Shown: positions 8,056-44,028 of the stretch, one piece after another | How the letters are laid out: each line of letters opens with the position of its first letter | How positions within the stretch are numbered: the first letter of the stretch is position 1 | IMG/VR virus record: IMGVR_UViG_3300017991_005548 | Location: 62,001-126,000 of that record | Strand: one strand, 5' to 3' | Length of the DNA stretch: 64,000 bases | The notes under the pieces: model-generated | Told to the model about the DNA's origin: nothing | Databases searched by the model: none | Seen by the model: only the letters and a program-made list of their open reading frames with translations | Translations under genes and position numbers: made by a program

Positions 8056-8146
8056 TGGTGACGCAGACGGGATTCGAACCCGCAAAGGAATCTCTTCCTA
8101 CCAGATTGAAAGTCTGGTTACTTCAGGCCAATTTGTATACTGCGCC
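8056..8146 (-). tRNA. tRNA-Glu(TTC) with long variable arm
   Basis: CCAGA-CTTTCAA-TCTGG; V arm AGGAA-GAGA-TTCCT; CCA. Confidence 0.85.
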
Positions 8147-8152
8147 ATTTTT

Positions 8153-8273
8153 TAGTCAGGACGGCTGGATTCGAACCAACTCCTTTAGCTCCTCAAGCTA
8201 AAATAAATATTGCTGTAGCGAACCTTATTGTCAAGTTCATGTTTATAACGTGCTACCATTACACTACGTCCTG
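8153..8273 (-). ncRNA. tRNA-like gene (C1-G72 body, GAG anticodon) with CAGCAA element between D and anticodon arms
   Basis: CAGGACG/CGTCCTG acceptor, 47-nt insert after D arm, TTAGC-TTGAGGA-GCTAA, ends A-CTA. Confidence 0.7.
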
Positions 8274-8318
8274 ATGGTCTGACCCTCAAAAATCATAAGT
8301 CTGATTCTCGAAAAGTCA

Positions 8319-8397
8319 TGGTCTGGATGGTAGGATTCGAACCTACGCTACTCCTCAGTCCAAGTGAGGCGGGATGACCAGACTTCCCCACATCCAG
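8319..8397 (-). tRNA. tRNA-Pro(TGG)
   Basis: CCTCA-CTTGGAC-TGAGG, CCA. Confidence 0.95.
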
Positions 8398-8427
8398 ATT
8401 AAGTCTTCTAAATTTTCAAAGATCATT

Positions 8428-8503
8428 TGGTGACCCCAGTGGGAATCGAACCCAACCTTCCCAGGATGAAAACCTGGTGTCCTAGCCGATAGACGATGGG
8501 GCC
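8428..8503 (-). tRNA. tRNA-Glu(TTC)
   Basis: CCAGG-TTTTCAT-CCTGG, CCA. Confidence 0.95.
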
Positions 8504-8512
8504 ATGGACAAT

Positions 8513-8578
8513 AAAAAAGCCCTCCTAACGCAAGCTAAGAGGGCACAAAAAAAGCCCTCCCGCTCATGGCAGAAGGGC
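8513..8578 (-). terminator. two tandem intrinsic terminators of the Glu/Pro attenuator
   Basis: GCCCT...AGGGC+U7 (8547-8578) and GCCCTC...GAGGGC+U6 (8513-8544). Confidence 0.8.
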
Positions 8579-8600
8579 CAAAATCATAGTTATGATCTAA

Positions 8601-8678
8601 CTACAGATCGGCTGACCTCCTGCCAAAGGCTGGCGGTTCTTCTCGTTCTGGTTCTCGAATGTACATGTAGTTGTTCAT
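8601..8678 (-). CDS. Glu/Pro attenuator leader peptide MNNYMYIREPEREEPPAFGRRSADL
   Basis: 25 codons with GAA x4 and CCA/CCG x3; RBS AAAGGA. Confidence 0.8.
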   Translation of the reverse strand: MNNYMYIREPEREEPPAFGRRSADL

Positions 8679-8703
8679 AACAAATTTTCCTTTCGTTACC
8701 CCC

Positions 8704-8731
8704 ATTATAAACCATCCTAGAGACTTTTCAA
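8704..8731 (-). promoter_or_regulatory. promoter of the Glu/Pro tRNA operon
   Basis: TTGAAA-N16-TATAAT. Confidence 0.8.
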
Positions 8732-8815
8732 GTCGAATTTGAAAATTTTTAGCAAAGTAATAAAAATAAAACGATTATGGCGACTTCCATATATACTGGA
8801 TTACACCAGAAACAA

Positions 8816-9076
8816 CTAGTCTTGCTTAGAAATTGTCTCAACATCTATATAATTCTTCCCCGTTAAAATCCAATTCTTCACTAACTTTTGCAAACATCTT
8901 GAGCAAAGAGCCGCTTCCTCATCTTTGACATCAAAATTATTCAAAGAGATCTGAATACAGACTTTCTTCCCCTTATTGTCCATCTCTATAGTAAACTCTT
9001 GGTCACCAAGTACCCCCGTTTCTGGAGTTACTTGGCAACCACAAGAGTCACATAGATATTCTATCTTAATCGCCAT
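8816..9076 (-). CDS. hypothetical protein with CxxC pairs
   Basis: CDSC...CSRC. Confidence 0.6.
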   Translation of the reverse strand: MAIKIEYLCDSCGCQVTPETGVLGDQEFTIEMDNKGKKVCIQISLNNFDVKDEEAALCSRCLQKLVKNWILTGKNYIDVETISKQD

Positions 9077-9594
9077 TACTTCTGAAAAACTCTTGCTCTT
9101 TTGGCATGAGATTGTCTAGCGGCAACCATTCGTGGATCATCATCAGCCAAACTCAATCCTTGTTCTGCTCCCAAAAGGAAAGAGTCAACGACTTCACGGG
9201 CCAATTTATGATTTTCTCCCCATTCTGGGTTTGTGGCAAATAGAAGGTCAATACCATTCAAAAGAGCCAAAGAGCCTGCTAAGGCCAAAGGGCGTTCGTT
9301 TGGCTTAATTTTACCCTCTGCAACGGCTTTATCGAGGTAATCCTCAACAACAGGGAAAAGAACCTGGGTATAGGTTGCTCCTTGAGAGGTATCAGCGGTT
9401 ACACCTTTGATAACTCCAATAACTTCTTTTACAACTGCCATTTCTTCTGGAGTTGGGTCGTCATAAGCAACCCAGGTTACTGAGGCACCTAAACCTGCGT
9501 TCAGAGCTACTACTTTTGCTTGGCTTGGTGTACAACCAGTTAATGGGATCATCAACATGGCTACGATTGCGGTGAAAAACATACTTCTTTTCAT
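9076..9594 (-). CDS. putative lipoprotein
   Basis: Signal peptide with lipobox LTGC. Confidence 0.65.
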   Translation of the reverse strand: MKRSMFFTAIVAMLMIPLTGCTPSQAKVVALNAGLGASVTWVAYDDPTPEEMAVVKEVIGVIKGVTADTSQGATYTQVLFPVVEDYLDKAVAEGKIKPNERPLALAGSLALLNGIDLLFATNPEWGENHKLAREVVDSFLLGAEQGLSLADDDPRMVAARQSHAKRARVFQK

Positions 9595-10112
9595 TTCAAG
9601 TTCTCCTTATTTTTGGTTAATTTTACTGAAATAAATCTTGGTTCATCTTTTCTACTAGTGACAGTCGCAAAATCAGAGCATTTTTCTACAATTTCGTCCA
9701 TTTTGCTCTTCGCAACATTAATATTTACTCTACGTCTGATCTTCATGGTGAAATGAAGTTCATGGCCATGATCAATAAACTCTTGAGCGTGTTTCATTTT
9801 ATGCTCAACATCATGATCGTCAATCGAAGGAGTAAAACGTATCTCCTTCATCTCATGTTTTTGATCTTTTTGTTGCTTCTTTTGTTTTTTACCTTTTTGA
9901 TATTTCCACTTACCGTAATCAATCAACTTACATAATGGGTTGTTCTTCTCGGTTTCCCCAGAGAAACAAACTAGGTCTAAACCTTTGTCCTGAGCTATCT
10001 CAATAGCATCAAGTGTTTTGATTTCTCTGTGAAATTTGTTATTTTCATCAACCAAATCAAGAATGACGAAGCTTTTGCTGTCAACGACCAAGAACGGTTC
10101 CATGGACTTCAA
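9591..10112 (-). CDS. infC: translation initiation factor IF-3
   Basis: AQDKGLDLV...CKLIDYGKWKYQ...KEIRFTPSIDDHD signature. Confidence 0.9.
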   Translation of the reverse strand: MKSMEPFLVVDSKSFVILDLVDENNKFHREIKTLDAIEIAQDKGLDLVCFSGETEKNNPLCKLIDYGKWKYQKGKKQKKQQKDQKHEMKEIRFTPSIDDHDVEHKMKHAQEFIDHGHELHFTMKIRRRVNINVAKSKMDEIVEKCSDFATVTSRKDEPRFISVKLTKNKENLK

Positions 10113-10123
10113 TGGTGTCCCTC

Positions 10124-10381
10124 CTATTTTGTGTAGTAATCTTTCATTTCTTTGATTAAGACTTCCAATTTCTCCTGATAAGCCTTCATTTCGACTATGT
10201 TGTTCCTCAGAAGAACGGCGTTGCCTTTATCTAAATACAACCTATCACCCTCTTTTTCAAACGCTGGTTGCGTTAAAACAGGTTTCTCAGGCATAACCCA
10301 TGCTTTACCAACTGGATTCGTATGATGACATCCAGTGAAGACAAACAAACTAAAACATGCTATTAAGATCGTCTTGTACAT
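10124..10381 (-). CDS. small lipoprotein (possible o-spanin)
   Basis: Lipobox FTGC, Pro-containing N-region, coiled C-terminus; overlaps upstream ORF. Confidence 0.5.
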   Translation of the reverse strand: MYKTILIACFSLFVFTGCHHTNPVGKAWVMPEKPVLTQPAFEKEGDRLYLDKGNAVLLRNNIVEMKAYQEKLEVLIKEMKDYYTK

Positions 10382-10568
10382 CGTCTAAATCCTCACTCTC
10401 TTTCTGCTCTTCCTTCTCTTCATCAATTTTATCATATTCTTCTTTCAGTGTCTCTTGAATTTCCTGGGCCTGAGCTTCTTGCTCTTCTTTCTCTTCCTTC
10501 TTCTTAGTAAAGAAGTAATCGAGAATAGTTTTGATAAGATCCCATAAACTCGTTCCTTTTTTACCCAT
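10350..10568 (-). CDS. acidic coiled-coil small protein
   Basis: ORF track, RBS GGAGG. Confidence 0.5.
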   Translation of the reverse strand: MGKKGTSLWDLIKTILDYFFTKKKEEKEEQEAQAQEIQETLKEEYDKIDEEKEEQKESEDLDDVQDDLNSMF

Positions 10569-10618
10569 GATATAGTCCCTCCAAATAGTTCTACCAGACT
10601 CTTTCTGAAAAATTGTTT

Positions 10619-10984
10619 TTAATCCTCTGCATTTTCCGACAATTTATTCACCTGAAGAACTACAGTATGTCTAGGTCTCCACCCAACAGTTTTTGCCGCC
10701 AGAATAGCTGATTTAGCTTTCACTTCAACTATTTGATCAGTTCTTTTATTTCTAATAACATAAGAGGTATCTATTTCATCCTTCTTATTATCGTATTTGC
10801 TTTTCTTCATGGCTTTGAATTCTTTGGCCCCTACGTGGACTTCAGGTTCCTTATCGACCTTTTTCGTAGCGTCAAGCAAATCGTTTTTTCTGAGAGAGTC
10901 AACAAGTTTTTTCGATACATTCTTATCCATCGGTATAAGCCTCAAAATTAAGATCTTCAAAGCAGAAGCCAAGAAGGGGTTCAA
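10619..10984 (-). CDS. hypothetical protein
   Basis: ORF track, in - strand gene run. Confidence 0.55.
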   Translation of the reverse strand: MNPFLASALKILILRLIPMDKNVSKKLVDSLRKNDLLDATKKVDKEPEVHVGAKEFKAMKKSKYDNKKDEIDTSYVIRNKRTDQIVEVKAKSAILAAKTVGWRPRHTVVLQVNKLSENAED

Positions 10985-11348
10985 TTAGCTCATCCAGAGG
11001 AACATTATTTTTTCTAGCTTTTTCTCTGATGTTATGAGCAAACATATTAGCGGACTCAACGAAGTTTTTTAATTCTTCGATATTATTGGATTCCAAAGTG
11101 CCAATCCATGTTGCTATTGGCTGATTGCAGGAACATTTGATTACACAACTTCCATGAACATGATCTACTTCCAATTCAAGGAACTCAAACTCAGTGCAAT
11201 CTTCTAAATGTTGTTTAATATCTTCTTCGAAACTCATGAGAATTGAACTTTTTTCTTTGAAATAATAGACTTTGTGCAAAAATGTATTTATATCGATAAT
11301 CCCTTCTGCACGTAATTTAATAAGACGATCTAATTCTTTAGAGTCCAT
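10923..11348 (-). CDS. hypothetical protein
   Basis: ORF track. Confidence 0.5.
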   Translation of the reverse strand: MDSKELDRLIKLRAEGIIDINTFLHKVYYFKEKSSILMSFEEDIKQHLEDCTEFEFLELEVDHVHGSCVIKCSCNQPIATWIGTLESNNIEELKNFVESANMFAHNIREKARKNNVPLDELIEPLLGFCFEDLNFEAYTDG

Positions 11349-11370
11349 TATAGCTGTTTTGAAAATGTTT

Positions 11371-11712
11371 TCAAGTTTCGTTGCTTCTTACCCATTCAGG
11401 CACTTCGCCTTCTTCCCAACGGATAGCTCTGTCCAAATCTTCTTGAGTGGGCATCAGAATATTGTTTGATATCATATAATTCTGCCAATCTTCCCCAAAC
11501 TGTTCTCGGCATAAAGCTTGACCCCAATCAAACAACTCTCCTGAAATTGAGTAAACGGTATTCCCATGTTTCTCATTCATTCTCTTGACCCATTCAAAAA
11601 CACCTAATACTACTTGTTTTTGCTGTTCTTCGAGACTCATTTGATCTACTGCTTCTTCTACTACCTCATTTGATTCTTGAGTAATGTCCATTTTTTCCTC
11701 AATGGTTTTCAA
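11371..11712 (-). CDS. hypothetical protein
   Basis: ORF track. Confidence 0.6.
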   Translation of the reverse strand: MKTIEEKMDITQESNEVVEEAVDQMSLEEQQKQVVLGVFEWVKRMNEKHGNTVYSISGELFDWGQALCREQFGEDWQNYMISNNILMPTQEDLDRAIRWEEGEVPEWVRSNET

Positions 11713-11749
11713 ATCAATTTGTTTTTTATTATACAGTCGATTTTCTCCA

Positions 11750-11853
11750 AAACAGTTTTTAAACGGTTTTAAACTGTTTATAAATGCAATTTCAGGTCGG
11801 TTGGTAAGTGTACACTCCCCCTATAGCAGGAAGGAGGAGTAATACACTTACCA
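11750..11853. repeat. palindromic AT-rich repeats plus long inverted repeat
   Basis: AAACAGTTTTTAAACGGTTTTAAACTGTTT; TGGTAAGTGTA (11802-11812)/TACACTTACCA (11843-11853). Confidence 0.6.
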
Positions 11854-11876
11854 GAGGCAGTTTATAACTGCAATTT

Positions 11877-12133
11877 CCAGTATAGGCAGTTTCATGTCAC
11901 GATAGTGTTGAGGACTGGATTACCTCGGGTAGGTTAGCGGTCACCACTACACTATACTCCCAGAATAAAATTCTCTAACGGTCGGCTTAAAGCTCGGTCA
12001 CTTTTCGTTTTAGCGCCATATTCATTGCTTCCTGGGCTTTACCCGTCTCGGAACCCAGCCCCTAGCCAACTAACCTAGAATAGTCAATCTGACTGGGGTA
12101 CAGCGCCCTACCGTATCAATCCATTTCGGTAGG
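11877..12133 (-). ncRNA. candidate structured ncRNA
   Basis: ORF-free, GC-enriched; helices CCTACCG/CGGTAGG, TAGGTTAGT/GCTAACCTA, CTGGG/CCCAG. Confidence 0.4.
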
Positions 12134-12175
12134 ATTTTGAATATTTCTGCTGATTTTAGTCTGGTAGTATTTTAG

Positions 12176-12601
12176 TTATTCAGTTTCTTTGAATAAAAAT
12201 TTATGTTCAGAAAAGTATTCGTTAATACAACAACATGTTTTTGGATGTTTGTTGTTCCCATTTCCATGATGAGTCATGATTTTTTTATCATCAAGTAAAT
12301 ATATCCATTCGGCCCAGTACCCATCACTATCGTCATATCTTATTACTCTTCCTAAATCATCATACTTGTACTCTTCCCAAAGCTGATCCCCATTTTTGTC
12401 AATATCGCTGTTCCATCTGGTTAATAAGCCTTTTGTGTAATGCTTTTCATCCCATGAACCATCGTCATAATCAGTCCTGACAACGCATGCATGAGTTGTC
12501 ATCTCGGCCCCTTGGAAGTTTACTCGGATCTCTTTGCCGCACCTCTTGCAAATTTTGGCATAATAGCTCTGGACCTTTCCATTGGGCAGTATTTCACCCA
12601 T
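12176..12601 (-). CDS. hypothetical protein, N-terminal CxxC and YD-like repeats
   Basis: CKRC; YKYDDLGRVIRYDDSDGYW, similar to ORF 5275-5619. Confidence 0.6.
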   Translation of the reverse strand: MGEILPNGKVQSYYAKICKRCGKEIRVNFQGAEMTTHACVVRTDYDDGSWDEKHYTKGLLTRWNSDIDKNGDQLWEEYKYDDLGRVIRYDDSDGYWAEWIYLLDDKKIMTHHGNGNNKHPKTCCCINEYFSEHKFLFKETE

Positions 12602-12609
12602 AATTTACC

Positions 12610-13545
12610 TCACTCAAACAGTGGATCTTTAAATTCACAAACTCTTCCATCATGATAGAAAACTCTGTCATATGGATGGACTTCTTGTCCCCAGAGATGT
12701 CTCAGTACTTCTAATGTATAGCTTCCCTGACAGCATTTCAAGTCAAAATTTCCGTCAGGGTATCTTTTTACAAAAGCACAGGATGATTTCATCTTAATTG
12801 GCTCAATCACAAAGTCTTGAACTCTTGTCTTTATCTCGTAACCATTTACGTTACAATTTTCCAGTATTTTTCGCATATCTTGTACTGGCATCGGAATAAG
12901 ATGGTCTGATTGACGTAAAATAAGCTCATCGGAAGAGATCATACTAAGATCATAGTTGGCGTTATGGACTGTCAGATGACCCCAAACAGCCCACATGATC
13001 TTTTTAGTGATGGTTTGTTGCTTTTTTGGGGACAAATTGCCGAAAATTATCTGTCGAATCTTTTTTGATTTCTTGAAGTATTCTAAATCTGTAAAATTCG
13101 AGACGAATTCGTCATAACTATCACAATTTTGAACTAACTCAGGGAAAGTCATCCGAAAAGTTTGAAAATTTGCCGAAACCAGGTCTACAGAGACCATTTG
13201 CTTCCCTACATTGTCATGTTTATAGACACATTTATCTGGAACTTTGCGGTTCAAACTAGTTTGGTGGATCGCATGGTCCTCATCTGTAACAAAATCCTGA
13301 TATTTACTGTGATCTTTGACTGAATCAATGATACTTTCGCGAGTGGCCTTCATATATGCCAAGAAATCGCCCTCATTTCCAAATCGAGCCAATGCCTCAC
13401 CAAGCATATCAACTTTACATAAAGTTTCATACTGCCTATTCAGGGCAAGTATCTGGTGTTCGAAATAGGGGTCTTGCACCACAGAAATAGGAAGACTGTA
13501 GTCTTTGACGAAACTGCGTCTTAGTGAATGAGACCAGTTTTTCAT
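12610..13545 (-). CDS. hypothetical protein with polymerase-palm-like motifs
   Basis: VDLVSANF, KKIRQIIFG, SSDEL resemble motifs A/B/C; inference. Confidence 0.35.
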   Translation of the reverse strand: MKNWSHSLRRSFVKDYSLPISVVQDPYFEHQILALNRQYETLCKVDMLGEALARFGNEGDFLAYMKATRESIIDSVKDHSKYQDFVTDEDHAIHQTSLNRKVPDKCVYKHDNVGKQMVSVDLVSANFQTFRMTFPELVQNCDSYDEFVSNFTDLEYFKKSKKIRQIIFGNLSPKKQQTITKKIMWAVWGHLTVHNANYDLSMISSDELILRQSDHLIPMPVQDMRKILENCNVNGYEIKTRVQDFVIEPIKMKSSCAFVKRYPDGNFDLKCCQGSYTLEVLRHLWGQEVHPYDRVFYHDGRVCEFKDPLFE

Positions 13546-13571
13546 TGTGTTGCTCCGATAAAATCAGATGA

Positions 13572-14009
13572 TTAGTCGAACAGATCTTGTAAAAAGCCTT
13601 TCTCAGGTATATCTTCAGGGTTCTTCTTGGCCCTGGTCATACCGTTGTTTATTACTGTACTGTTTAATCTAACGACCTTTTCTCGTTTGTCAAGGTCTTT
13701 TATCTTAACAAAGTAACTTTTTGCATTTCCAAGTCTGTAGAGCTTACCTAAATCCATTACATCTTCAAAATCACAGTATTTGACTTCTTGAATCTTGTTT
13801 AGATCACTTTGGGAGAAGAGGAAACATCTTTCATTCTCATCATATTTGTTCTCAACCCAAAGTGCATAGTAGAATTCGCTTTCTACAGCTTTTTTGTTTT
13901 TATTAGGCAGTTTCACCATTTTTCCGTGAACTGCATTGGCATTTCTAAAGAGTCCCATAATAGCCTCCATTGTTTTAATCAATGGATTTATTCTGGAAAA
14001 CTTTTTCAA
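13572..14009 (-). CDS. hypothetical protein
   Basis: ORF track. Confidence 0.55.
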   Translation of the reverse strand: MKKFSRINPLIKTMEAIMGLFRNANAVHGKMVKLPNKNKKAVESEFYYALWVENKYDENERCFLFSQSDLNKIQEVKYCDFEDVMDLGKLYRLGNAKSYFVKIKDLDKREKVVRLNSTVINNGMTRAKKNPEDIPEKGFLQDLFD

Positions 14010-14018
14010 CTACCTTTA

Positions 14019-27358: not shown

Positions 27359-27450
27359 TGGGCGCAAGGACGGAATTCGAATCCGTAGGGGAGATTACCT
27401 CCAACAGGGTCACAACCTGTCACGCTAAGCCAATTACGTTCTACCTTGCG
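27359..27450 (-). tRNA. tRNA-His(GTG) with long variable arm
   Basis: ACAGG-TTGTGAC-CCTGT; V arm GGAG-GTAAT-CTCC; C73, CCA. Confidence 0.8.
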
Positions 27451-27451: not shown

Positions 27452-27527
27452 TGGGCTACTCGACGGATCTTGAAACCGCAACCTCCAGGGCCACAACCTA
27501 GCGCTCTGCCTTTGAGCTACGAGTAGC
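27452..27527 (-). tRNA. tRNA-His(GTG)
   Basis: G-1:C73, loop TTGTGGC, CCA. Confidence 0.9.
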
Positions 27528-27538: not shown

Positions 27539-28210
27539 CTATCCCAACCATTTGTCTCTTTTAAATCCACCTATTTCTTGAATGCCTCCCATAATTTTTT
27601 GTTTTATTTCAACGCTGTGTAATCTTACTGTGCAAATTCCGTATTTTAGTTTACCCTGAAATTCGCTAGATTTAAAATAACATTTTCTCAAATTTTCTTT
27701 CGTCAAACTAAGTGCATTAAGCCAAAATTCAACAATCTCTTGTTCAGAAACTCCATTGTTTGTATAGGCATTTATAGAAAGAGCAAATCTTTTTTCTTCA
27801 AACTCAAAGTGTTCTCTAAGGAACTTCATAAAAAGAATCATCATGTCAATATCGCTATTGCAGAATGTCACTCCTTTATTGGATTCTTTTGTTCCTTCTG
27901 CCCAATAAAGAATACAGCCAACCCGAAAACTTTCAGATATTTTAGCAAGTGCTCTTCCATCAGTTTGCCACTTCCTTCTTTTTCTTCTGAATTTTTCCGA
28001 ATATTTCTCCTGTTTACCAAAATAACCACCTTTTCTTGTTTTTGTCCTGTGCCGCAATTTTAGGTTTTCTATTTGTTCTTTCGTTAGTTGAATATCTCGA
28101 ACCCATAAACTAACAGACGATTGAGACACATCTAGAATCTTGGCTATTTTCTTTATAGATTGTCCACTTTTTCTTAGTTCTCTTGCTTTGTTTCTTTCGA
28201 CTTTTTTCAT
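27539..28210 (-). mobile_element. HTH + LAGLIDADG-like putative homing endonuclease inside tRNA operon
   Basis: N-terminal HTH (GQSIKKIAKILDVSQSSVSLW), LYWAEG, FCNSD; likely start MKK at 28210. Confidence 0.6.
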
Positions 28211-28268
28211 TTTCGAACCCCCATAGTTATATGTGATATAACATATTATACAGCAAGTTCGAACTTTT

Positions 28269-28343
28269 TGGTAGCAGTATCGGGACTTGAACCCGAACGG
28301 CACTCCTTATGAAAGAGTCGCACTACCATTATGCTATACTGCT
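28269..28343 (-). tRNA. tRNA-Met or Ile2 (CAT)
   Basis: ACTCT-TTCATAA-GGAGT, CCA. Confidence 0.85.
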
Positions 28344-28751: not shown

Positions 28752-28829
28752 TGGTTCTGCGAGAGGGACTTGAACCCCCGACCTCCTCCTTATCAGGGAG
28801 GCGCTACTTACCATCTGAGCTACCGCAGA
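28752..28829 (-). tRNA. tRNA-Ile(GAT)
   Basis: Loop CTGATAA, CCA. Confidence 0.9.
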
Positions 28830-28834: not shown

Positions 28835-28925
28835 TGGTGGGAGTAGCAGGACTTGAACCTGCGTTTACCTTTCGGCCTCCTGTGTATCAGACAGGCGCTC
28901 TAACCAAATACTGAGCTATACTCCC
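28835..28925 (-). tRNA. tRNA-Ile(GAT) with long variable arm
   Basis: Loop CTGATAC; V arm GCC-GAAA-GGT; CCA. Confidence 0.85.
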
Positions 28926-29576: not shown

Positions 29577-29584
29577 TCAGGCAC

Positions 29585-29617
29585 AAAAAAAGCCCAAGCT
29601 CCTTAGAGCCTGGGCTT
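29585..29617 (-). terminator. attenuator terminator of the Arg-led tRNA operon
   Basis: AAGCCCAGGCTC-TAAG-GAGCTTGGGCTT + U run. Confidence 0.85.
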
Positions 29618-29635
29618 CGTAAATCTGCTTATCTA

Positions 29636-29716
29636 TCAGAACATGCGATAGCGCAGATCAGAAGCCCTGTGGCTCCAATCGCGTCTAATAATATGCATGT
29701 CTCTAACAACGTTCAT
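29636..29716 (-). CDS. multi-amino-acid attenuator leader peptide MNVVRDMHIIRRDWSHRASDLRYRMF
   Basis: 26 codons; RBS AAGGA; residues 3-14 are only V,R,D,M,H,I,W. Confidence 0.8.
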   Translation of the reverse strand: MNVVRDMHIIRRDWSHRASDLRYRMF

Positions 29717-29813
29717 TTTTCTTAAATCCTTATTCGATTTAGTTTTTCAACTTACCCTCATTAGTCACATTTGATTTGAGTTTTTCTCAGATCTGTACCA
29801 AGAAGTTATTATC

Positions 29814-29841
29814 ATTATAAGCCTTATTCAGAGTATTTCAA
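29814..29841 (-). promoter_or_regulatory. promoter of the Arg-led tRNA operon
   Basis: TTGAAA-N16-TATAAT. Confidence 0.8.
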
Positions 29842-35407: not shown

Positions 35408-35409
35408 TC

Positions 35410-36040: not shown

Positions 36041-36045
36041 TGAGT

Positions 36046-36537: not shown

Positions 36538-36554
36538 AATATGTCTCTCCTATT

Positions 36555-37222: not shown

Positions 37223-37263
37223 TGTCTTGCTCCTTAGTTAGACTTAAGAACGATGATATTTAT

Positions 37264-37291
37264 AGTATAGACCGAAAAAACAATAAATCAA
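37264..37291 (-). promoter_or_regulatory. sigma70-like promoter
   Basis: TTGATT-N16-TATACT. Confidence 0.55.
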
Positions 37292-38093: not shown

Positions 38094-38121
38094 TGTAATA
38101 CTCTAAATTTTATTGCAAAAC

Positions 38122-38327
38122 TCCAAGCTCATAGGCAGGATTCTGTTTAATATTTTCCATCATTTATCTATTGGCATCAACCCGACCATTATAGAGTAGC
38201 TCACCCTCTAGGTCTGTTTGAATTGCAACCTCGGTAGTGCAAACGAATCTCTTCTCCTACCTTAAGCTAAGTTGTCCTGACCTTCCTCTCATGAGCATTA
38301 CCTCGTAGAGCGATGGATCGGCTTGAA
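38122..38327 (-). ncRNA. rnpB: minimal RNase P RNA
   Basis: CR-I GAGGAAGGTCAGGA (38275-88), CR-IV AGATAAAT (38162-69), CR-V ACAGAATCCTGCCTA (38132-46); P4 AGGTCAGGA/TCCTGCCT, P1 TCAAGC/GCTTGG, P2 TCCATCG/TGATGGA. Confidence 0.85.
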
Positions 38328-38333
38328 AATGTT

Positions 38334-38765
38334 TTATCCTGGCCAAGGCCAAGACATAGTTAAGTGTATTGAATACATAAATCCGCCACCATCCTTAACG
38401 GCGGAATATATAAAGGGGAAAGGCTTCTTTTTAATGTCTGCGATGGCTTCCTCAAGATAAGCGATAACCTCTTCCTCAGCCTTATTATCTCCAAGTTCTT
38501 TCCGCTTTTCGTGCCAACGAATCTGATCCCTATTTGGAACAATCCGAATAAACATGTCAGCAGGAATCCTGTCCTCATTACTACAGAACTCAGTCTTAAC
38601 CCCAATTTTCTTTTCGTTGGCTTTCTTAATAAAATCTAGGATTTCTGCTTCAGTCATCTCCATAACTTCAGACATCCCAAAATCTTCTTCTGGAATGCCA
38701 AGTGACTCTAGGATATGGACATCCTCTGCAATTGCGTGAAAAACGACTTTCATTGATGGCTCCAA
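38334..38765 (-). CDS. hypothetical protein
   Basis: ORF track. Confidence 0.55.
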   Translation of the reverse strand: MEPSMKVVFHAIAEDVHILESLGIPEEDFGMSEVMEMTEAEILDFIKKANEKKIGVKTEFCSNEDRIPADMFIRIVPNRDQIRWHEKRKELGDNKAEEEVIAYLEEAIADIKKKPFPFIYSAVKDGGGFMYSIHLTMSWPWPG

Positions 38766-39155
38766 TTATTTCTGTTTTCTACCAAGCAGTTTTTTAGTCT
38801 TCTTTTCCAAATCGTTGAGTTCAGAGAGCATTTTATCTCTTTCTTTACCTTTTTTGTTGGCTCTAACCTCACGTTTCATCCTACGGATTTCAGCAAGTGC
38901 TGATTTGAGTCTGTCTTCATTGGTTTTTTCTTCAGGCTCTTCGTCAAGAGCTTCGTCTATATCATCCAAAAATTTATCAATGATATGTTCAGTATCTCCT
39001 GCCTTGTTAGCCCACTGTATAACGAGTTCTGTTGCAGTGAAGTTGAATTCATCCATAATTCCATCTATGCCAAACTCGTTGTAAGTTTCTTCTATGTTTT
39101 GGGCAATTTTCGGAGAGCATTCGTTTTTGATCAAGAATTTATATAAGCTTTTCAT
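38766..39155 (-). CDS. hypothetical protein
   Basis: ORF track. Confidence 0.55.
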   Translation of the reverse strand: MKSLYKFLIKNECSPKIAQNIEETYNEFGIDGIMDEFNFTATELVIQWANKAGDTEHIIDKFLDDIDEALDEEPEEKTNEDRLKSALAEIRRMKREVRANKKGKERDKMLSELNDLEKKTKKLLGRKQK

Positions 39156-39607
39156 CTGTTTTGCTCAATGTATTTTTTCTTGTATCTCAGTGCTACTTCG
39201 CGAGTAGTAGGAATTATTTCCCTGTTCCCTTCATTCTTTAATTTCTTGTATCCTGTTCCCCATCCCTCTTCTGCGAGGCCACATTCTCTGCAAGATCTAA
39301 AAGGAGGTCTATGAGAATGATAATCACTGCTTTTCGCTTCAGCTTCTAAAACTAATTCATGAGGACATTTGTCCATATAAGCTTCTTCAGCTTTTATTCT
39401 GAGTTCAGTCAAGGATTTTAATCTGCGTCCCACTTGGTCAATTTTGTCTTGGACTTGTTGAATGAGAGCCTTTTCAACTGCACCATCACTGATTGCTTCT
39501 TGAACAGTCGATCCTAAGTCTGCAATACTTTGGATTTCTTCTGCTTCTTCGTCTTCGCACCACATTGGGTCAGGATCTGTATCAATCATTTCATTATTTA
39601 TGGACAT
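39152..39607 (-). CDS. hypothetical protein with Zn-finger-like motif
   Basis: CPH...CRECG. Confidence 0.55.
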   Translation of the reverse strand: MSINNEMIDTDPDPMWCEDEEAEEIQSIADLGSTVQEAISDGAVEKALIQQVQDKIDQVGRRLKSLTELRIKAEEAYMDKCPHELVLEAEAKSSDYHSHRPPFRSCRECGLAEEGWGTGYKKLKNEGNREIIPTTREVALRYKKKYIEQNR

Positions 39608-39637
39608 AGTCTACCTCATCGATTGTTGGTTAGACTT

Positions 39638-39729
39638 TGGCGGAAGGAGAGGGATTTGAACCCTCGTGCCCCTTTCAGGACCAACCGCTTTCCAGGCGGT
39701 GACGATTAACCAGACTCCGTCATCCTTCC
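39638..39729 (-). tRNA. tRNA-Ser(GGA)
   Basis: Loop CTGGAAA, long V arm, G73 CCA. Confidence 0.95.
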
Positions 39730-39735
39730 ATATTT

Positions 39736-39993
39736 TTATTTTTCATCTTGGGTTTTCGTTTCCCCTACTTTGATCAGATGTCTTGGGTTAACTAAAACAA
39801 GATAATTTTTAAGTACACAATATCCATTATCCAACATATACTCAATTTCATACATGGTGTTTATACTCATACTCCAAATACCTGCACCATGCCAGTCTTG
39901 ATATTTTTGGGGGCGTTTAACAACATCCCCAATTTTCAAGCCGTTAGGATTGCAAACATCTGCCAGTTCAAGATCCGTTCTTTTCATCTTCAA
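39736..39993 (-). CDS. hypothetical protein
   Basis: ORF track. Confidence 0.5.
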   Translation of the reverse strand: MKMKRTDLELADVCNPNGLKIGDVVKRPQKYQDWHGAGIWSMSINTMYEIEYMLDNGYCVLKNYLVLVNPRHLIKVGETKTQDEK

Positions 39994-40246
39994 GTTCCTT
40001 GTTGATGAAATTCTTTAACACTGCATTGAACCCAATAGAGACAAGTTCTGAAAGCTCGTCCTCTGTTAAATCATGGGTTCTGACCCCCTCAATATTTTCT
40101 GATGCTTTTACAGCAACAACAGGAAGTCCACTCTCTTTTATTAAATCTTTTAGTGCAATAAGTATTAACGTATCGATCTCTCCTTCAGTAAGATCGATCT
40201 TAAATGGTTCGCCTGCTTCAAGTTTTTCTGGTTCAAGAATTTTCAT
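39968..40246 (-). CDS. hypothetical protein
   Basis: ORF track. Confidence 0.5.
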   Translation of the reverse strand: MKILEPEKLEAGEPFKIDLTEGEIDTLILIALKDLIKESGLPVVAVKASENIEGVRTHDLTEDELSELVSIGFNAVLKNFINKELEDEKNGS

Positions 40247-40473
40247 CGTTTAATTACCTTCTCAGGCATTTCATCTCTTTTGTTCACAACCATGTACTTC
40301 CCATTGCCCTCAAAAATAACAGAAAGACCGCCATTTATTAGCTTAGCTGTTTCGCATTTGATCATTTCTGCCCCATCTTTTCTTTTGATCATCTCCCCAA
40401 CATACTCTTCCTGTACTTTTTGATTGATAAAATCTGTTAGATTCATATATCTACCTTTTATTTGGCTCTTCAA
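40243..40473 (-). CDS. hypothetical protein
   Basis: ORF track. Confidence 0.45.
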   Translation of the reverse strand: MKSQIKGRYMNLTDFINQKVQEEYVGEMIKRKDGAEMIKCETAKLINGGLSVIFEGNGKYMVVNKRDEMPEKVIKR

Positions 40474-40678
40474 TCACCATTATACAGCCAAGATTAGTAT
40501 CAAAGTAACTAAGTCCATATTCTTCCAGAACTTCTAGGACCAGTTCCCTCATTTTAAGGGAATTTCCTGTAACAACCTCAAAAGGAGGGTCATAATTAAA
40601 AATATGAGAGTCAAGTAAAGACCGAACATCTTGATGCTTAACCCCATGTAAATCTAACTTCATTTTCCGTGTAACCAA
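40451..40678 (-). CDS. Smr-domain-like small protein
   Basis: LDLHG...VVTGNS motif. Confidence 0.6.
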   Translation of the reverse strand: MVTRKMKLDLHGVKHQDVRSLLDSHIFNYDPPFEVVTGNSLKMRELVLEVLEEYGLSYFDTNLGCIMVIEEPNKR

Positions 40679-41325
40679 CCCTTCCGATTATGAGTCTCTT
40701 TCATTTGAACCTCTTCGGAAGGGACATAAAGACAGTGGTCCTGGATATATCGTTGAACTTCTTCGTCCAAATATGGCAAAAAGTCTGATCTGCCATGTTT
40801 TTTGAAGTGATCTCTTGCCATAGTAGACGAACATTCGGTAATTTTGTCTTCTACGTCCAAGAAAAGATGGGGAGGATTCTTATACCATCGATATTTCTTC
40901 TTCAATTCGATTCCACTTCTTGTTACAACAACAAATTTGGCAATTTCCCGTAATTTTTTGAAATTATGCCAGTTAATGAAGTTGTTTACGTTGTCAGCAC
41001 CAATGATAAAACTGATATCAACATCAAGTTGTGGGTCTTTGAGGAGGGTTTGGACTAATTCGAAGGTCGAACCACTCAGTTCATGTCTAATTTCGTAATC
41101 AAATACATGAAGTTTCGGATTTTTTCTGCAAGCGATAGCGCACATCCTGAGTCTGTGTAAATTAAGCTCTAAATTCTTACCAAATCGATGTTTATTGCAA
41201 GGCAAGAGCCAAACTTCATCAAATTTTCCTTTTTCAAGGACAAATTCAGCTACTTGTATATGAGCAAGTGTTGGGGGATTGAAAGCCCCGCCAAGAATGG
41301 CAATTTTAGTCATAGTTTTCTCCAA
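40660..41325 (-). CDS. nadD: nicotinate/nicotinamide mononucleotide adenylyltransferase
   Basis: GGAFNPPTLAH, FIIGADN...W, CSSTMAR. Confidence 0.9.
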   Translation of the reverse strand: MEKTMTKIAILGGAFNPPTLAHIQVAEFVLEKGKFDEVWLLPCNKHRFGKNLELNLHRLRMCAIACRKNPKLHVFDYEIRHELSGSTFELVQTLLKDPQLDVDISFIIGADNVNNFINWHNFKKLREIAKFVVVTRSGIELKKKYRWYKNPPHLFLDVEDKITECSSTMARDHFKKHGRSDFLPYLDEEVQRYIQDHCLYVPSEEVQMKETHNRKGWLHGK

Positions 41326-41331
41326 TGATTT

Positions 41332-41419
41332 TGGCGGAAGAGGTGGGATTCGAACCCACGGATGCTCTCACATCAACGGTTTTCAAGACCGCCGCCTTCG
41401 ACCTCTCAGCCACTCTTCC
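41332..41419 (-). tRNA. tRNA-Ser(TGA)
   Basis: Loop CTTGAAA, long V arm, CCA. Confidence 0.95.
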
Positions 41420-41428
41420 AAATTTTGA

Positions 41429-41562
41429 TGGACAAGACGGGATTCGAACCCGCAAATCGAGATGCCTCACCCATTGCTTAGGAGAAAAATAACTCCTGCC
41501 CATGGTAGCGACATTACTCTTAAGACCAGAGCCTCAACTTTGCCAATTTAAGTTACTTGCCC
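41429..41562 (-). ncRNA. tRNA-like RNA with branched ~75-nt insert replacing the anticodon loop
   Basis: GGGCAAG/CTTGTCC acceptor, D arm, T arm GCGGG-TTCGAAT-CCCGT; two inserted hairpins; no CCA. Confidence 0.65.
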
Positions 41563-41576
41563 GTCTTGTCAAATTT

Positions 41577-41698
41577 TGGCGGATGAGGTAGGATTCGAAC
41601 CTACACTGTAGCGGTTTCTGTTTTTTGGTTGCTGAAGAGAACCTTTTTGTCAAGTTCATTTTTTGGACCGCCGTCTCTGCCAGTTGGACTACTCATCC
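41577..41698 (-). ncRNA. tRNA-like gene with CAGCAA element in the anticodon loop
   Basis: GGATGAG/CTCATCC-GCCA; stem GCGGT/ACCGC encloses 51 nt. Confidence 0.75.
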
Positions 41699-41709
41699 AT
41701 ATTTATAGT

Positions 41710-41737
41710 AATATAGCCTTAAAATAAGAGATTGCAA
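41710..41737 (-). promoter_or_regulatory. internal promoter
   Basis: TTGCAA-N16-TATATT. Confidence 0.55.
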
Positions 41738-41756
41738 GTTAAATATAAAGAAAAAT

Positions 41757-41843
41757 TGGAGGAAGATTGAGGGTTCGAACCCCATCCCTTTCGGAACCAT
41801 CTGTTTTCGAAACAGTGACAGGAGCCATCCTGCATAATCTTCC
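41757..41843 (-). tRNA. tRNA-Ser(CGA)
   Basis: Loop TTCGAAA, long V arm, CCA (U73). Confidence 0.85.
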
Positions 41844-41851
41844 ATAGAAAT

Positions 41852-41941
41852 TGGCGGAAGGGGAGGGATTCGAACCCTCGGACCCCTTGCGGGGTCGCAG
41901 GTTTAGCAAACCTGTACTTTCGGCCACTCAGTCACCCTTCC
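41852..41941 (-). tRNA. tRNA-Ser(GCT)
   Basis: Loop TTGCTAA, long V arm, CCA. Confidence 0.95.
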
Positions 41942-41951
41942 ATAGGGGGCA

Positions 41952-42689
41952 TTATACCCCAAAAATCAATAATTCAAAATCGCCATTCTCATGTTCTACG
42001 ATTGCAGAGCAATGCTCTACCCAATCTCCGCAGTTATAGTAGTCAATCCCATCAATTTTTTTGATTATAGGAGAATGAACATGACCACATATAACTCCAT
42101 CGCAATGATTCTCTTTGGCATACTCTGAAAGGAGACCTTCAAACTCTCCAACATAAGTAACAGCTTTTTTAAAATTTTCCCTGGCAAACTTTGATAAACG
42201 AACTCTTTTCACTCCGAACATCCTTAAACATCTTGCCAGGAACTCATTCATTGAAACAAGAGTGTCATAACCCCAACTTCCAACCTTTGAGATCATGACT
42301 CCAATTCTTGAAAAAAGAATGAAATCAAACTTATCTCCATGAGTGATGTAATACTTCTTTCCAAAACTGTGATAATATGTTTCTTTACAAATTTCCAGGT
42401 TCGGATAATGAAAACTGTCCAAAAGTTCCATCATACCATGATCATGATTTCCTAAAACATAATGGACGTTACAGTGTTTTGACATTTTTAGAAGTCTTCT
42501 AATGACTTCTGTTTGGTTTTTATCCCATTTAGTTCTGTCTAATCTCCAAAGATCAAAGATATCTCCGATAAGATATAAATTGTCACATTCAGTCTCTTTT
42601 AGGAATTTAAGTAGTTCTTTAGATTTGCATCCAACACTGGCCATGTGGCAGTCTGAGATGAATACTGCTCGGTACTTAGTTTTACTCAT
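41952..42689 (-). CDS. LpxH-like calcineurin-type metallophosphoesterase
   Basis: FISDCH, GDIFD, GNHD, THGD, GHVH, NCGDW; likely start MSKTK at 42689. Confidence 0.85.
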   Translation of the reverse strand: MSKTKYRAVFISDCHMASVGCKSKELLKFLKETECDNLYLIGDIFDLWRLDRTKWDKNQTEVIRRLLKMSKHCNVHYVLGNHDHGMMELLDSFHYPNLEICKETYYHSFGKKYYITHGDKFDFILFSRIGVMISKVGSWGYDTLVSMNEFLARCLRMFGVKRVRLSKFARENFKKAVTYVGEFEGLLSEYAKENHCDGVICGHVHSPIIKKIDGIDYYNCGDWVEHCSAIVEHENGDFELLIFGV

Positions 42690-42777
42690 ATTTTTCCTCC
42701 TATAAGTAGTAAGGAATAATACTGAGAAAACAGGATAAAACCTACTCAATAATGAGTTGTTAACCAAGTATTAATAT

Positions 42778-42868
42778 TGGCAGAGGGAGTGGGACTCGAA
42801 CCCACAAACCGCATTTCTACAGCTTACATGATTTCAAATCAAGCTCTTCATCCAGCCAGATTCCCTCC
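42778..42868 (-). tRNA. tRNA-Ser(TGA), divergent
   Basis: CTTGA-TTTGAAA-TCATG, long V arm, G73 CCA. Confidence 0.75.
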
Positions 42869-42874
42869 ATTGAT

Positions 42875-42960
42875 TGGTAGCTAGGAGGGGGGTCGAACCC
42901 CTACGCCTTTCGGCATTAGTTTCTAAGACTAACATGTCTACCAAGTTCCATCACCTAGCC
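42875..42960 (-). tRNA. tRNA-Leu(TAG)
   Basis: Loop CTTAGAA, long V arm, CCA. Confidence 0.95.
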
Positions 42961-42965
42961 ATCTT

Positions 42966-43042
42966 TGGTAGCCTCGCTGGGAGTCGAACCCAGAACATAC
43001 AGTTTCTAAGACTGCCCTCTCTGCCAATTGGAGTACGAGACC
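42966..43042 (-). tRNA. tRNA-Leu(TAG), short variable arm
   Basis: Loop CTTAGAA, 5-nt V region, CCA. Confidence 0.85.
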
Positions 43043-43050
43043 ATTAAATT

Positions 43051-43136
43051 TGGCGGAAGGTAGGAGATTCGAACTCCTATGCCCGTGAGGACGACAGTTT
43101 AGCAAACTGCTGGCTTACCATTCGCCACAACCTTCC
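43051..43136 (-). tRNA. tRNA-Ser(GCT)
   Basis: Loop TTGCTAA, CCA. Confidence 0.9.
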
Positions 43137-43138
43137 AT

Positions 43139-43225
43139 TGGTAGCCAGGGAGGGCCTCGAACCCTTACTCCCTTTCGGGAACTGGATTTTGAATCCAGCG
43201 CGTCTGCCAATTTCACCACCTGGCC
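43139..43225 (-). tRNA. tRNA-Leu(CAA)
   Basis: Loop TTCAAAA, long V arm, CCA. Confidence 0.95.
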
Positions 43226-43236
43226 AATAAATTTAA

Positions 43237-43304
43237 TGGAGCTAATGAGATTCGAACTCATCCCCCTGCCTCTATGGGCAGTTCGGCTACCGTCTAGTAA
43301 CCCC
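43237..43304 (-). ncRNA. degenerate tRNA-like RNA with G3:U70 acceptor
   Basis: GGGGTTA/TAGCTCC-A, T arm ATGAG-TTCGAAT-CTCAT, 6-nt loop CATAGA, poor D arm. Confidence 0.5.
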
Positions 43305-43336
43305 AATTGGTTGCGTATAAACATATAAACAATATT

Positions 43337-43424
43337 TGGTAGTCTCGGGGAGATTCGAACTCCCACCTCCTTCGCGGAGACAACGACCTCAACGTTGCGT
43401 GTCTGCCAGTTCCACCACGAGACC
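43337..43424 (-). tRNA. tRNA-Leu(GAG)
   Basis: Loop TTGAGGT, long V arm, CCA. Confidence 0.95.
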
Positions 43425-43494
43425 ATTATAAGTGGCCATAACTGACGAATTAACCCCAGTTTTGGCCGTTTATTCGTAATATATTACGAATTAT

Positions 43495-43570
43495 TGGTAG
43501 CCCTGGTCGGATTCGAACCGACACTTTACGGATTTTAAGTCCGCTCCCTCTGCCGTTGGAGTACAGGGCC
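43495..43570 (-). tRNA. tRNA-Leu(TAA), short variable arm
   Basis: Loop CTTAAAA, CCA. Confidence 0.85.
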
Positions 43571-43645
43571 ATTTTTAACTGTTTTTCTCGTTATAGTGGA
43601 AAATATAACTGTTTTTCCAGTTTTGTAACTGTTTTTCCAGTAAAA

Positions 43646-43737
43646 TGGTGAGCAGGGAGGGATTCGAACCCCCAATGTTTACCCAAAGGGGACAGATTTA
43701 CAGTCTGCCGCAACACCACCATCGTTGCCGCCTACCC
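43646..43737 (-). tRNA. tRNA-Tyr(GTA)
   Basis: Loop CTGTAAA, long V arm, CCA. Confidence 0.9.
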
Positions 43738-43741
43738 ATTT

Positions 43742-43829
43742 TGGTCCTGGTGGTAGGTAACGATCCTACTTGATGCGCAATGATGATAGTTTTACAGACT
43801 ACCCCGTCTCCTTAACGGTCTACACCAGG
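43742..43829 (-). tRNA. tRNA-Tyr(GTA), atypical T loop
   Basis: Loop CTGTAAA; T loop ATCGTTA; CCA. Confidence 0.75.
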
Positions 43830-43940
43830 ATAAAAAGGTGACTTAAGTCACCTAATGCCTCTGGGTCAGACTTACCAATACCGTCATATTGGGTCCGATA
43901 GCCCAGTAAGGACTTTAAGCGTCTGGTTTTCCCCAGACCC

Positions 43941-44028
43941 TGGAGCGCGGTGAGGGATTCGAACCCTCGCGGACATAAGTCCCATCAGTTTTGCAGACTG
44001 TGCCATTAAACCACTCTGGCAACCGCGC
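43941..44028 (-). tRNA. tRNA-Cys(GCA) with long variable arm
   Basis: Loop CTGCAAA; V arm GGAC-TTAT-GTCC; U73 CCA. Confidence 0.85.

Follow-up and report, generated by a model that had tools for sequence, protein, structure and literature searches.

Exchanged variable arms in the tRNA genes of a megaphage-like element: a widespread and apparently undescribed phage tRNA architecture

The tRNA genes of the locus

In bacteria, long variable arms are normally found only on the transfer RNAs (tRNAs) for Leu, Ser, Tyr and selenocysteine (Sec), a rule that is basic to tRNA identity and is built into tRNA gene finders and isotype models. The original prediction for the DNA studied here, which stated that restriction correctly, pointed to departures from it in both directions: long arms on tRNAs for Glu, His, Ile and Cys, and short arms on two tRNAs for Leu. 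These genes lie in a stretch of 64,000 nt (the window) that comprises bases 62001-126000 of the 296-kb IMG/VR record IMGVR_UViG_3300017991_005548. This record partly coincides with another of 476 kb from the same contig family, starting at base 212,354 of the latter and extending 32.4 kb past its end. Joined, the two records describe a phage-like element of at least 508.7 kb, whose ends do not join and which contains about 65 tRNA genes in both records combined. ARAGORN detects 34 of them in the window, all on the minus strand (as are the further window genes and sites given below) and arranged in four clusters. The Rfam tRNA model, whose gathering score is 29 bits, agrees with these calls and adds extra tRNA matches that bear large inserts.

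Three of the long arms were borne out by ARAGORN and Rfam at the predicted positions, on the minus strand. The tRNA-Glu(UUC) at 8056-8146 has 91 nt, a 7-bp acceptor stem with a 5-bp T stem (a 7/5 fold), a 3-bp D stem, a variable region of 16-17 nt with a 5-bp stem closed by a GAGA loop, A73 and an encoded CCA, and reaches 51.3 bits. The tRNA-Ile(GAU) at 28835-28925, also of 91 nt, combines a 4-bp class-I D arm with a 16-nt variable region folded into a GAAA-capped stem, again with A73 and CCA (63.9 bits). The tRNA-Cys(GCA) at 43941-44028 (88 nt, 7/5) shows a class-II-like D arm, a 16-nt variable region with a 4-bp stem, U73 and CCA; it scores 51 bits with the general tRNA model and is not listed under the tRNA-Sec model of Rfam. 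As for the fourth gene, a His(GUG)-like tRNA of 92 nt at 27359-27450, the long arm is indeed present, but the gene is the weakest member of the set: it was missed by default ARAGORN and found only at a relaxed threshold, and its Rfam score of 28.4 bits stays below the gathering score. It carries C73, a U instead of G at position -1 and a 4-nt connector between the acceptor and D stems, and an intrinsic-terminator-like hairpin follows it directly. Post-transcriptional addition of G-1 to this tRNA found no support, as no Thg1-like gene was found in the phage.

All four window tRNAs keep the 7/5 acceptor/T fold, and their variable regions (16-17 nt, with stems of 3-5 bp) are of class II length, that is, above 10 nt with a stem-loop, whereas their anticodons (UUC, GUG, GAU and GCA) lie outside the Leu/Ser/Tyr/Sec set. 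The long-arm tRNAs retain 7-nt anticodon loops with U33 and a purine at position 37, together with their CCA ends. Moreover, each of them has a conventional twin with the same anticodon, as had been anticipated: a tRNA-Glu at 8428-8503 (76 nt, with a Glu-type D arm containing U11-A24 and U13.G22), a tRNA-His at 27452-27526 (with an encoded G-1 and C73), a tRNA-Ile at 28752-28829 (78 nt) and a tRNA-Cys at 44035-44105 (71 nt, U73, CCA not encoded).

Short-arm tRNA-Leu genes

The opposite departure was equally confirmed by ARAGORN and Rfam, which give variable arms of only 4-5 nt for the two predicted tRNA-Leu genes. The tRNA-Leu(UAG) at 42966-43042 has 77 nt, a 5-nt variable loop and A73 (51.9 bits), and its adjacent twin at 42875-42960 is an ordinary long-arm tRNA-Leu(UAG) called by ARAGORN. 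The tRNA-Leu(UAA) at 43495-43570 has 76 nt, a variable loop of 4-5 nt and A73 (56.3 bits); its nearest relative in the genome is the short tRNA-Leu(UAG), and a long-arm tRNA-Leu(UAA) counterpart is found outside the window (L016 5125-5210).

Short-arm tRNA-Leu genes are by no means private to this element, with matches in 259 phage records. Phage Felix O1 (AF320576) encodes three tRNA-Leu genes of 78-79 nt, and the D arm of the window tRNA-Leu(UAG), UACUCCAAUUGGCAGAGAGG, is identical to that of the Felix O1 tRNA-Leu(UAA); the type also occurs in a Bacillus phage. Both window genes, which retain A73 and a Leu-type D loop, fit the Felix O1 type, with a Leu anticodon, A73, a variable loop of 4-7 nt and the D arm UA(C/G)(U/C)CCAAyUGGCAGAGg, and are members of it without any substantive difference. 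The long arm is in fact dispensable for the leucyl-tRNA synthetase (LeuRS) of E. coli, and likewise in mitochondrial Leu systems (PMC9976931). The tRNA-Leu of animal mitochondria shares A73 and the short loop, although in that case the arm was lost in a reduced genetic system and not beside a long-arm twin.

The same trait elsewhere in the genome

Outside the window, and beyond what the original prediction noted, the same genome encodes long-arm tRNAs for Lys(UUU), Gly(UCC), Met(CAU) and Asn(GUU), so that at least eight long-arm amino-acid families are present. A conventional copy with the same anticodon adjoins each of these four or shares its tRNA cluster, at a distance of about 1 kb in the case of Lys. 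The long-arm genes are neither recent duplicates nor close paralogues of their twins, and their bodies are of two types. Class-II-like D arms are found in Lys, Glu, Cys and Asn (and loosely in His), where Glu, Cys, Lys and Asn have a 3-bp D stem with an enlarged D loop, and those of Lys, Cys and Asn resemble the D arms of tRNA-Ser or tRNA-Tyr. On the other hand, Ile, Gly and Met keep an ordinary 4-bp class-I D arm to which an expanded variable loop is joined. In this regard, the long-arm tRNA-Glu of the window has its D arm and its anticodon stem (CAGACU...AAUCUG) in common with a phage tRNA-Tyr, which suggests a remodelled class-II scaffold, whereas the major long-arm Glu family of other phages retains a Glu-specific D arm with U13.G22. 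The existence of both body types indicates that the same architecture was reached by two routes.

Distribution in phages and cells

IMG/VR was scanned with a single pattern, a Glu(UUC) anticodon loop with a T loop 20-32 nt behind it, which gave 99 stretches. Eighty were fetched, and 45 of these contained a real long-arm tRNA-Glu(UUC); the flanks of these 45 loci contributed 33 more long-arm class-I tRNAs of 11 amino acids, among them Gln, Asp, Cys, Met, Val, Asn, His, Ala, Trp and Pro. A conventional twin with the same anticodon was found within the fetched locus for 35 of 76 long-arm tRNAs. The same pattern was run against 185,579 prokaryote species, each represented by one genome, and gave mostly chance matches: among 80 loci examined, only seven held a real long-arm Glu, three of them in tRNA-dense, phage-like contigs of metagenome-assembled genomes. 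The long-arm trait is thus enriched in phages, being far more frequent in viral contigs than in cellular ones when the same pattern is used. Single-copy long-arm tRNA-Glu(UUC) genes of 86-95 nt with G73 were seen on contigs from Solirubrobacterales and Dehalococcoidia genomes that are not tRNA-dense (L151, L165 and L196); some bacteria may own a long-arm tRNA-Glu, or these genes may lie in prophages.

From these data a phage long-arm tRNA-Glu(UUC) family was defined in this analysis by a CUUUCAA anticodon loop, a hairpin arm of 11-21 nt, the 7/5 fold, mostly A73 and location in phage tRNA arrays, and the window gene at 8056-8146 fits it. The family extends to cultured phages. The Klebsiella phages phi1_175008, KP13-26 and FKP3 (Stephanstirmvirinae) encode a long-arm tRNA-Glu(UUC) of 89 nt and a long-arm tRNA-Asn(GUU) of 85 nt, the former with 82.7% identity to the window gene over 75 nt and with the same type of D arm. 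In the cultured Klebsiella phage PQ360875, the long-arm genes are the sole tRNA-Glu and tRNA-Asn of the fetched tRNA cluster, unlike the phage of the window, which keeps both forms and spreads the trait over at least eight amino acids. Long-arm Glu and His tRNAs are also present in the published huge-phage genomes LR756502 and LR756500. In public records such genes bear no label beyond tRNA-Glu, tRNA-Asn or tRNA-Leu, and no description of long-arm class-I phage tRNAs with a 7/5 fold was found in the full-text literature searched, which covered few subscription journals. The architecture is therefore widespread in phages and apparently undescribed, and the genome studied here is an extreme case of it.

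The variable arm as a conserved structure

Chance does not account for the arms. In a set of 66 unique long-arm class-I tRNAs of viral loci, the variable region forms a best stem of 4.4 bp on average, compared with 3.07 bp in shuffled sequences, and none of 1000 shuffles reached the observed total of pairing. The loops are mostly of the GNRA type, with GAAA occurring 14 times, and the stem sequences vary freely between phages with pairing retained. The idea that one mobile hairpin had been copied into all the arms was rejected, given that the arm sequences are unrelated to each other.

Identity elements and charging

The amino acid expected for each tRNA was judged by bacterial identity rules, E. 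coli-type in the case of the Glu D arm. In this genome, the discriminator base of the long-arm tRNAs is A in Lys, Ile and Met, C in His, U in Cys and Gly, and G in Asn, which makes it cognate in all seven non-Glu cases (permutation fraction 0.0024). When these seven were pooled with 29 unique non-Glu long-arm tRNAs from other phage loci, and the majority base among conventional phage tRNAs of each amino acid was taken as reference, 32 of the 36 matched; the mean of shuffled sets was 13.5, and none of 20000 shuffles reached 32. The discriminator of the long-arm Asp is G73. Moreover, the long-arm tRNA-His of four other loci encodes G-1 opposite C73, and the long-arm tRNA-Gly, which has its acceptor stem in common with its conventional twin, displays the full bacterial Gly identity set (G1-C72, C2-G71, G3-C70, U73 and C35C36). 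Two exceptions to cognate identity are the window His, without G-1, and the window Glu, without a Glu-type D arm.

The enzymes for charging would have to come from the host. No domain of the Glu/Gln (PF00749), class IIa (PF00587), Ile/Leu/Val (PF00133), Cys (PF01406), Lys/Asp/Asn (PF00152) or His (PF13393) synthetases was found in the 476-kb record, and neither was EF-Tu, so that the idea of an orthogonal phage synthetase was rejected. Together with the cognate discriminators, the G-1:C73 pair of the His tRNAs and the complete Gly set, these absences make cognate charging by host enzymes the best reading, and it is most likely, as far as identity elements can tell, that the long-arm tRNAs, and equally the short-arm tRNA-Leu, carry the correct amino acid via host synthetases. 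The alternative put forward in the original prediction, namely cross-charging by the seryl-tRNA synthetase (SerRS) or LeuRS to cause deliberate mistranslation, finds no support here, given that in those 32 of 36 cases the discriminators follow the amino acid of the anticodon, not the Ser (G73) or Leu (A73) pattern; the His pair of other phages and the Gly acceptor set also speak against it.

Comparison with known irregular tRNAs

Several groups of tRNAs with unusual arms have been reported, two of which, the allo-tRNAs and the selC* tRNAs, had been named for comparison in the original prediction. Allo-tRNAs combine 8/4 or 9/3 helices and a long arm with Ser identity and non-Ser anticodons (PMC5389517). 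All four window tRNAs differ from them in their 7/5 helix, and Ser identity (G73 or U73 with a long arm) is contradicted by A73 in Glu and Ile and by C73 in His, with U73 present only in Cys. The selC* tRNA-Cys (PMC5389517, PMC7609411) comes closest in part, since its U73 and GCA (or UCA) anticodon are shared by the long-arm Cys at 43941-44028. However, its tRNA-Sec-like body, with a modified 8/4 fold and longer acceptor and anticodon stems, is not that of the window gene, which has a 7/5 fold, an anticodon stem of 4-5 bp and its 51 bits with the general tRNA model rather than that for tRNA-Sec. The resemblance thus holds for the discriminator and anticodon of Cys but not for the helix, and an allo-tRNA or selC* identity of the long-arm tRNAs was rejected on the grounds that they are 7/5 and match the general model.

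The nev-tRNAs of nematodes and other eukaryotic tRNAs with a non-canonical variable arm share the combination of a class-II-type arm with an anticodon other than Leu, Ser or Tyr. Nev-tRNAs with Gly or Ile anticodons retain the identity of Leu and accept this amino acid in vitro (PMC3333845). These are nematode nuclear genes, whereas the tRNAs studied here are phage-encoded, stand beside conventional twins and have the discriminator that matches their anticodon (several of them the full acceptor set); a nev-tRNA identity is unlikely in view of the nematode origin and Leu identity of that group, the DNA studied here being a phage contig of marine sediment or seawater. Irregular tRNAs have also been noted in phages, and some irregular tRNAs are charged yet unused in translation (PMC5389517).

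A separate gene of the window, the tRNA-Ser(CGA) at 41757-41843, does have an 8-bp acceptor stem, a 4-bp T stem and U73, and scores 37 bits with the tRNA-Sec model; it corresponds to the 8/4 allo-type tRNA-Ser reported earlier from phages (PMC5389517). A second tRNA-Sec-like match, of 38.3 bits and below threshold, lies at 42781-42869.

The closest functional precedent comes from nucleases directed at the variable region. Both Retron-Eco7 PtuAB and Septu cut tRNA-Tyr within the variable loop (PMC13096335, PMC11555353), and the tRNA-Tyr of phage T5 resists Retron-Eco7 PtuAB owing to its distinctive variable loop (PMC13096335). Like the genes described here, the latter is a phage isoacceptor whose variable region differs from that of the host, opposed to nucleases that attack this region, and this is the functional model favoured. 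It differs in that the change was made within the class-II arm of a single tRNA and shown experimentally, whereas here class-I tRNAs gain an arm, or tRNA-Leu loses it, in many isoacceptors. Evasion of anticodon nucleases by phage tRNAs with an altered loop is also known.

Proposed role and rival explanations

We give about even chances to the view that these are genuine phage tRNAs of two recurrent swapped families, probably charged correctly and decoding normally, with the arm acting as a disguise of shape. One family consists of class-I isoacceptors endowed with a hairpin variable arm, the other of tRNA-Leu deprived of it. Both retain the 7/5 helix, the anticodon loop and an anticodon-appropriate discriminator, which makes charging by host synthetases, carriage by host EF-Tu and ordinary decoding most likely. 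The swap would change tRNA shape around the variable pocket, in the inner corner of the L. The phage would thereby gain a second, structurally distinct but functional copy of an isoacceptor, and the swapped copy could evade those factors of the host, for instance defence nucleases or toxins, that sense the shape of a tRNA or cleave its variable region. Evasion of nucleases, also contemplated in the original prediction, is plausible by analogy with the variable-loop nucleases, and the protective purpose of the arm is what we infer from it. An RtcB RNA ligase gene (226 bits; G001:C1:198526-199671, L260 1387-2655) lies directly downstream of a tRNA cluster, and a 680-aa open reading frame (ORF) contains a PolyA_pol domain of the CCA-adding type (G001:C1:413467-413880); both fit a genome under tRNA-directed attack and, with the nuclease precedent, favour the model of shape-distinct copies. 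More tentatively, and with a lower probability than for the explanation just given, a general phage counter-defence may be envisaged in which swapped isoacceptors stay chargeable and able to decode while evading or resisting the host factors that recognise tRNA class or cut at the variable pocket. In a variant, the arm may be a tag read by a phage factor to mark 'self' tRNAs. On this view the megaphage of the window would stand as the fullest case, combining no fewer than eight long-arm families with two short-arm Leu tRNAs and with tRNAs that bear a conserved extra hairpin module.

Several points weigh against this disguise by shape. No nuclease is known whose action would be blocked by giving a class-I tRNA a variable arm, and most known anticodon nucleases recognise the anticodon loop, so that an added arm may not help. 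The geometry of the arm does not separate Ser-like from other types, which left a test for SerRS recognition uninformative. The window Glu lacks the D-arm determinants of an E. coli-type glutamyl-tRNA synthetase (U11-A24 and U13.G22), and its Tyr-like body with A73 and U35 makes its charging uncertain; the window His adds its sub-threshold score and the absence of G-1. Three DNA runs, of two sediment metagenomes and one seawater metagenome, yield contigs that match the window exactly and so offer no population signal, and no RNA run was found to carry the stretch.

Tolerated drift would explain the same genes without any function for the arm: if the variable region is not read by these synthetases, its gain or loss could be neutral in fast-evolving arrays and decoding would be normal. 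That E. coli LeuRS and mitochondrial Leu systems work without the long arm (PMC9976931) is in keeping with it, as are the heterogeneous sequence, length and flanking geometry of the arms and the distance between long-arm copies and their twins, which makes them old lineages. It is nevertheless considered unlikely, because the hairpins are kept by compensating changes and closed by stable GNRA loops, the same architecture was reached independently along two routes, viral contigs show the trait far more often than cellular ones for the same pattern, and a conventional gene is repeatedly found next to a long-arm gene with its anticodon. The tRNAs could instead serve outside decoding and stay off the ribosome, whether by drawing off regulators, toxins or tRNA-directed nucleases as decoys or sponges or by donating amino acids to non-ribosomal reactions, much as some irregular tRNAs are charged and remain unused in translation (PMC5389517). 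The non-canonical window His without G-1 would suit such a role, and the same genome contains tRNA-like genes with large inserts that could hardly decode as they stand. This appears improbable for the group as a whole, where the 7/5 helix read by EF-Tu is intact, the 7-nt anticodon loops, U33, purine 37, CCA and cognate discriminators are kept, and eight amino-acid families are hard to reconcile with one non-ribosomal pathway.

Deliberate or tolerated mischarging is judged slightly less credible still. Under this explanation, which widens the cross-charging of the original prediction to a third enzyme, SerRS, LeuRS or the tyrosyl-tRNA synthetase would charge the class-II-like bodies, and Glu, Lys, Cys and Asn codons would be read in part as Ser, Leu or Tyr. 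The Ser- or Tyr-like D arms of the long-arm Lys, Cys and Asn point in that direction, as does the long-arm Glu, with the D arm and anticodon stem of a phage tRNA-Tyr, A73 and U35; nev-tRNAs that take Leu in vitro under Gly or Ile anticodons (PMC3333845) and allo-tRNAs that pair Ser identity with non-Ser anticodons (PMC5389517) provide precedents. Against them stand discriminators that match the amino acid of the anticodon and neither Ser nor Leu, with Cys U73, the G-1:C73 of the His tRNAs of other phages and the full Gly set all pointing to the cognate enzymes, as well as the ordinary class-I bodies of the long-arm Ile, Gly and Met. Moreover, the fetched cluster of the Klebsiella phage has no tRNA-Glu other than the long-arm one, and GAA is the commonest codon of the phage studied here (51 per 1000), so that misreading would damage its own proteins. 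Finally, decaying pseudogenes or artefacts of prediction might be suspected from the His copy, below the Rfam gathering score and missed by default ARAGORN, and from the tRNA fragments seen between genes. Such an origin is hardly believable for Glu, Ile, Cys and the two short Leu, which score 51-64 bits and have intact, complete cloverleaves, a GTTCGAATC-type T loop and an encoded CCA, nor does it agree with the conservation of homologous forms in many unrelated phage contigs and in cultured phages. It is largely refuted for all except the His copy, which alone is borderline.

Many phages thus break the long-arm rule both ways while keeping cognate identity marks. If charging is correct, at least a dozen synthetase systems would accept the variable arm as a module to be exchanged at will, which is of use in engineering orthogonal or tagged tRNAs, and selection on the overall shape of tRNA would enter the phage-host conflict, beyond the changes in the anticodon loop already described. 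It would also flag a class of phage tRNAs that current annotation overlooks or mislabels. Cultured carriers exist in the Klebsiella Stephanstirmvirinae phages and in Felix O1, so the question is directly testable.

Genome context

The element reads as a megaphage, not as a cell. Genes of phage style in the 476-kb record encode a ClpB-like ATPase, DnaJ, a DnaB-like helicase, a Dam-type methylase, homing-endonuclease-like proteins and an IF3 homologue. No match was obtained by megablast of 12 kb against cultured phages, and IMG/VR scans for relatives seeded with a metallophosphatase and the DnaB-like helicase gave only the same contig or tRNA-free loci. The standard genetic code 11 fits, with long ORFs. 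A tRNA with a CUA (amber) anticodon is encoded outside the window (G000 197395-197469); the amber recoding that it brought to mind is unsupported, since code 11 gives long ORFs and TAG is the stop of 21 of 193 long ORFs.

Within the window, the IF3 homologue (173 aa, with N and C domains) lies at 9591-10112, just upstream of a tRNA cluster. A LAGLIDADG-type gene and a helix-turn-helix-type gene, both homing-endonuclease-like, are found at 4130-5149 and 27539-28303, beside or inside tRNA clusters, and recall the homing endonucleases of T-even phages that amplify tRNA regions (PMC13096335). The same strong promoter-like site, ACTTGAAA-N16-TATAAT, precedes each tRNA cluster (8504-8731, 44106-44429, 29577-29841 and 2869-3071), and one or two intrinsic-terminator hairpins stand directly before the first tRNA of each cluster, with a short ORF between them in at least the Glu and Phe leaders. 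These leaders could represent an attenuation or antitermination layout that controls the arrays. The RtcB and PolyA_pol-family genes together resemble a tRNA-repair toolkit.

Insert-bearing and other irregular tRNA-like genes

Five tRNA-like genes with intact acceptor, D and T arms carry an insert of 45-60 nt after the D arm, three of them in the window (7658-7785, 8156-8273 and 41580-41698) and two elsewhere (L019 973-1098 and 3401-3520); one adjoins the RtcB ligase gene. The insert is a conserved module in which a hairpin (GAACUU-loop-AAGGUUC), whose copies differ by compensating changes, is succeeded by nnUnC(A/U)GCAA. Four of the five genes have an anticodon stem-loop after the module, with a discriminator that suits the anticodon: A for Leu GAG and for a likely Leu UAA in a 9-nt loop, U for Cys GCA, and G for AUU (Asn codon AAU). 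In the gene at 41580-41698, the module takes the place of the anticodon loop. It matches no Rfam family, and a pattern scan of IMG/VR for the module in a tRNA context elsewhere gave only chance matches in coding DNA. No archaeal-type splicing endonuclease for these genes was found in the phage; a search for T4 Rnl1 gave no match in the phage and none in the control genomes either. The insert-bearing genes could encode tRNAs with five arms, or the insert could be a small intron of a new kind.

Other irregular forms accompany them. Isolated fragments composed of a T arm and a 3' acceptor strand lie between tRNA genes near 8010-8045 and 7545-7565. A 70-nt tRNA-like gene at 43234-43305 has a CAUAGAG loop (UAG anticodon, A33) and a weak match to the transfer-messenger RNA model. 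Another tRNA-like gene, at 41429-41562 (34.6 bits with Rfam), folds a variable region of about 55 nt into a long hairpin and has a GGUCUUA anticodon loop (UCU, without U33); in it the long-arm trait seems to be taken to an extreme.

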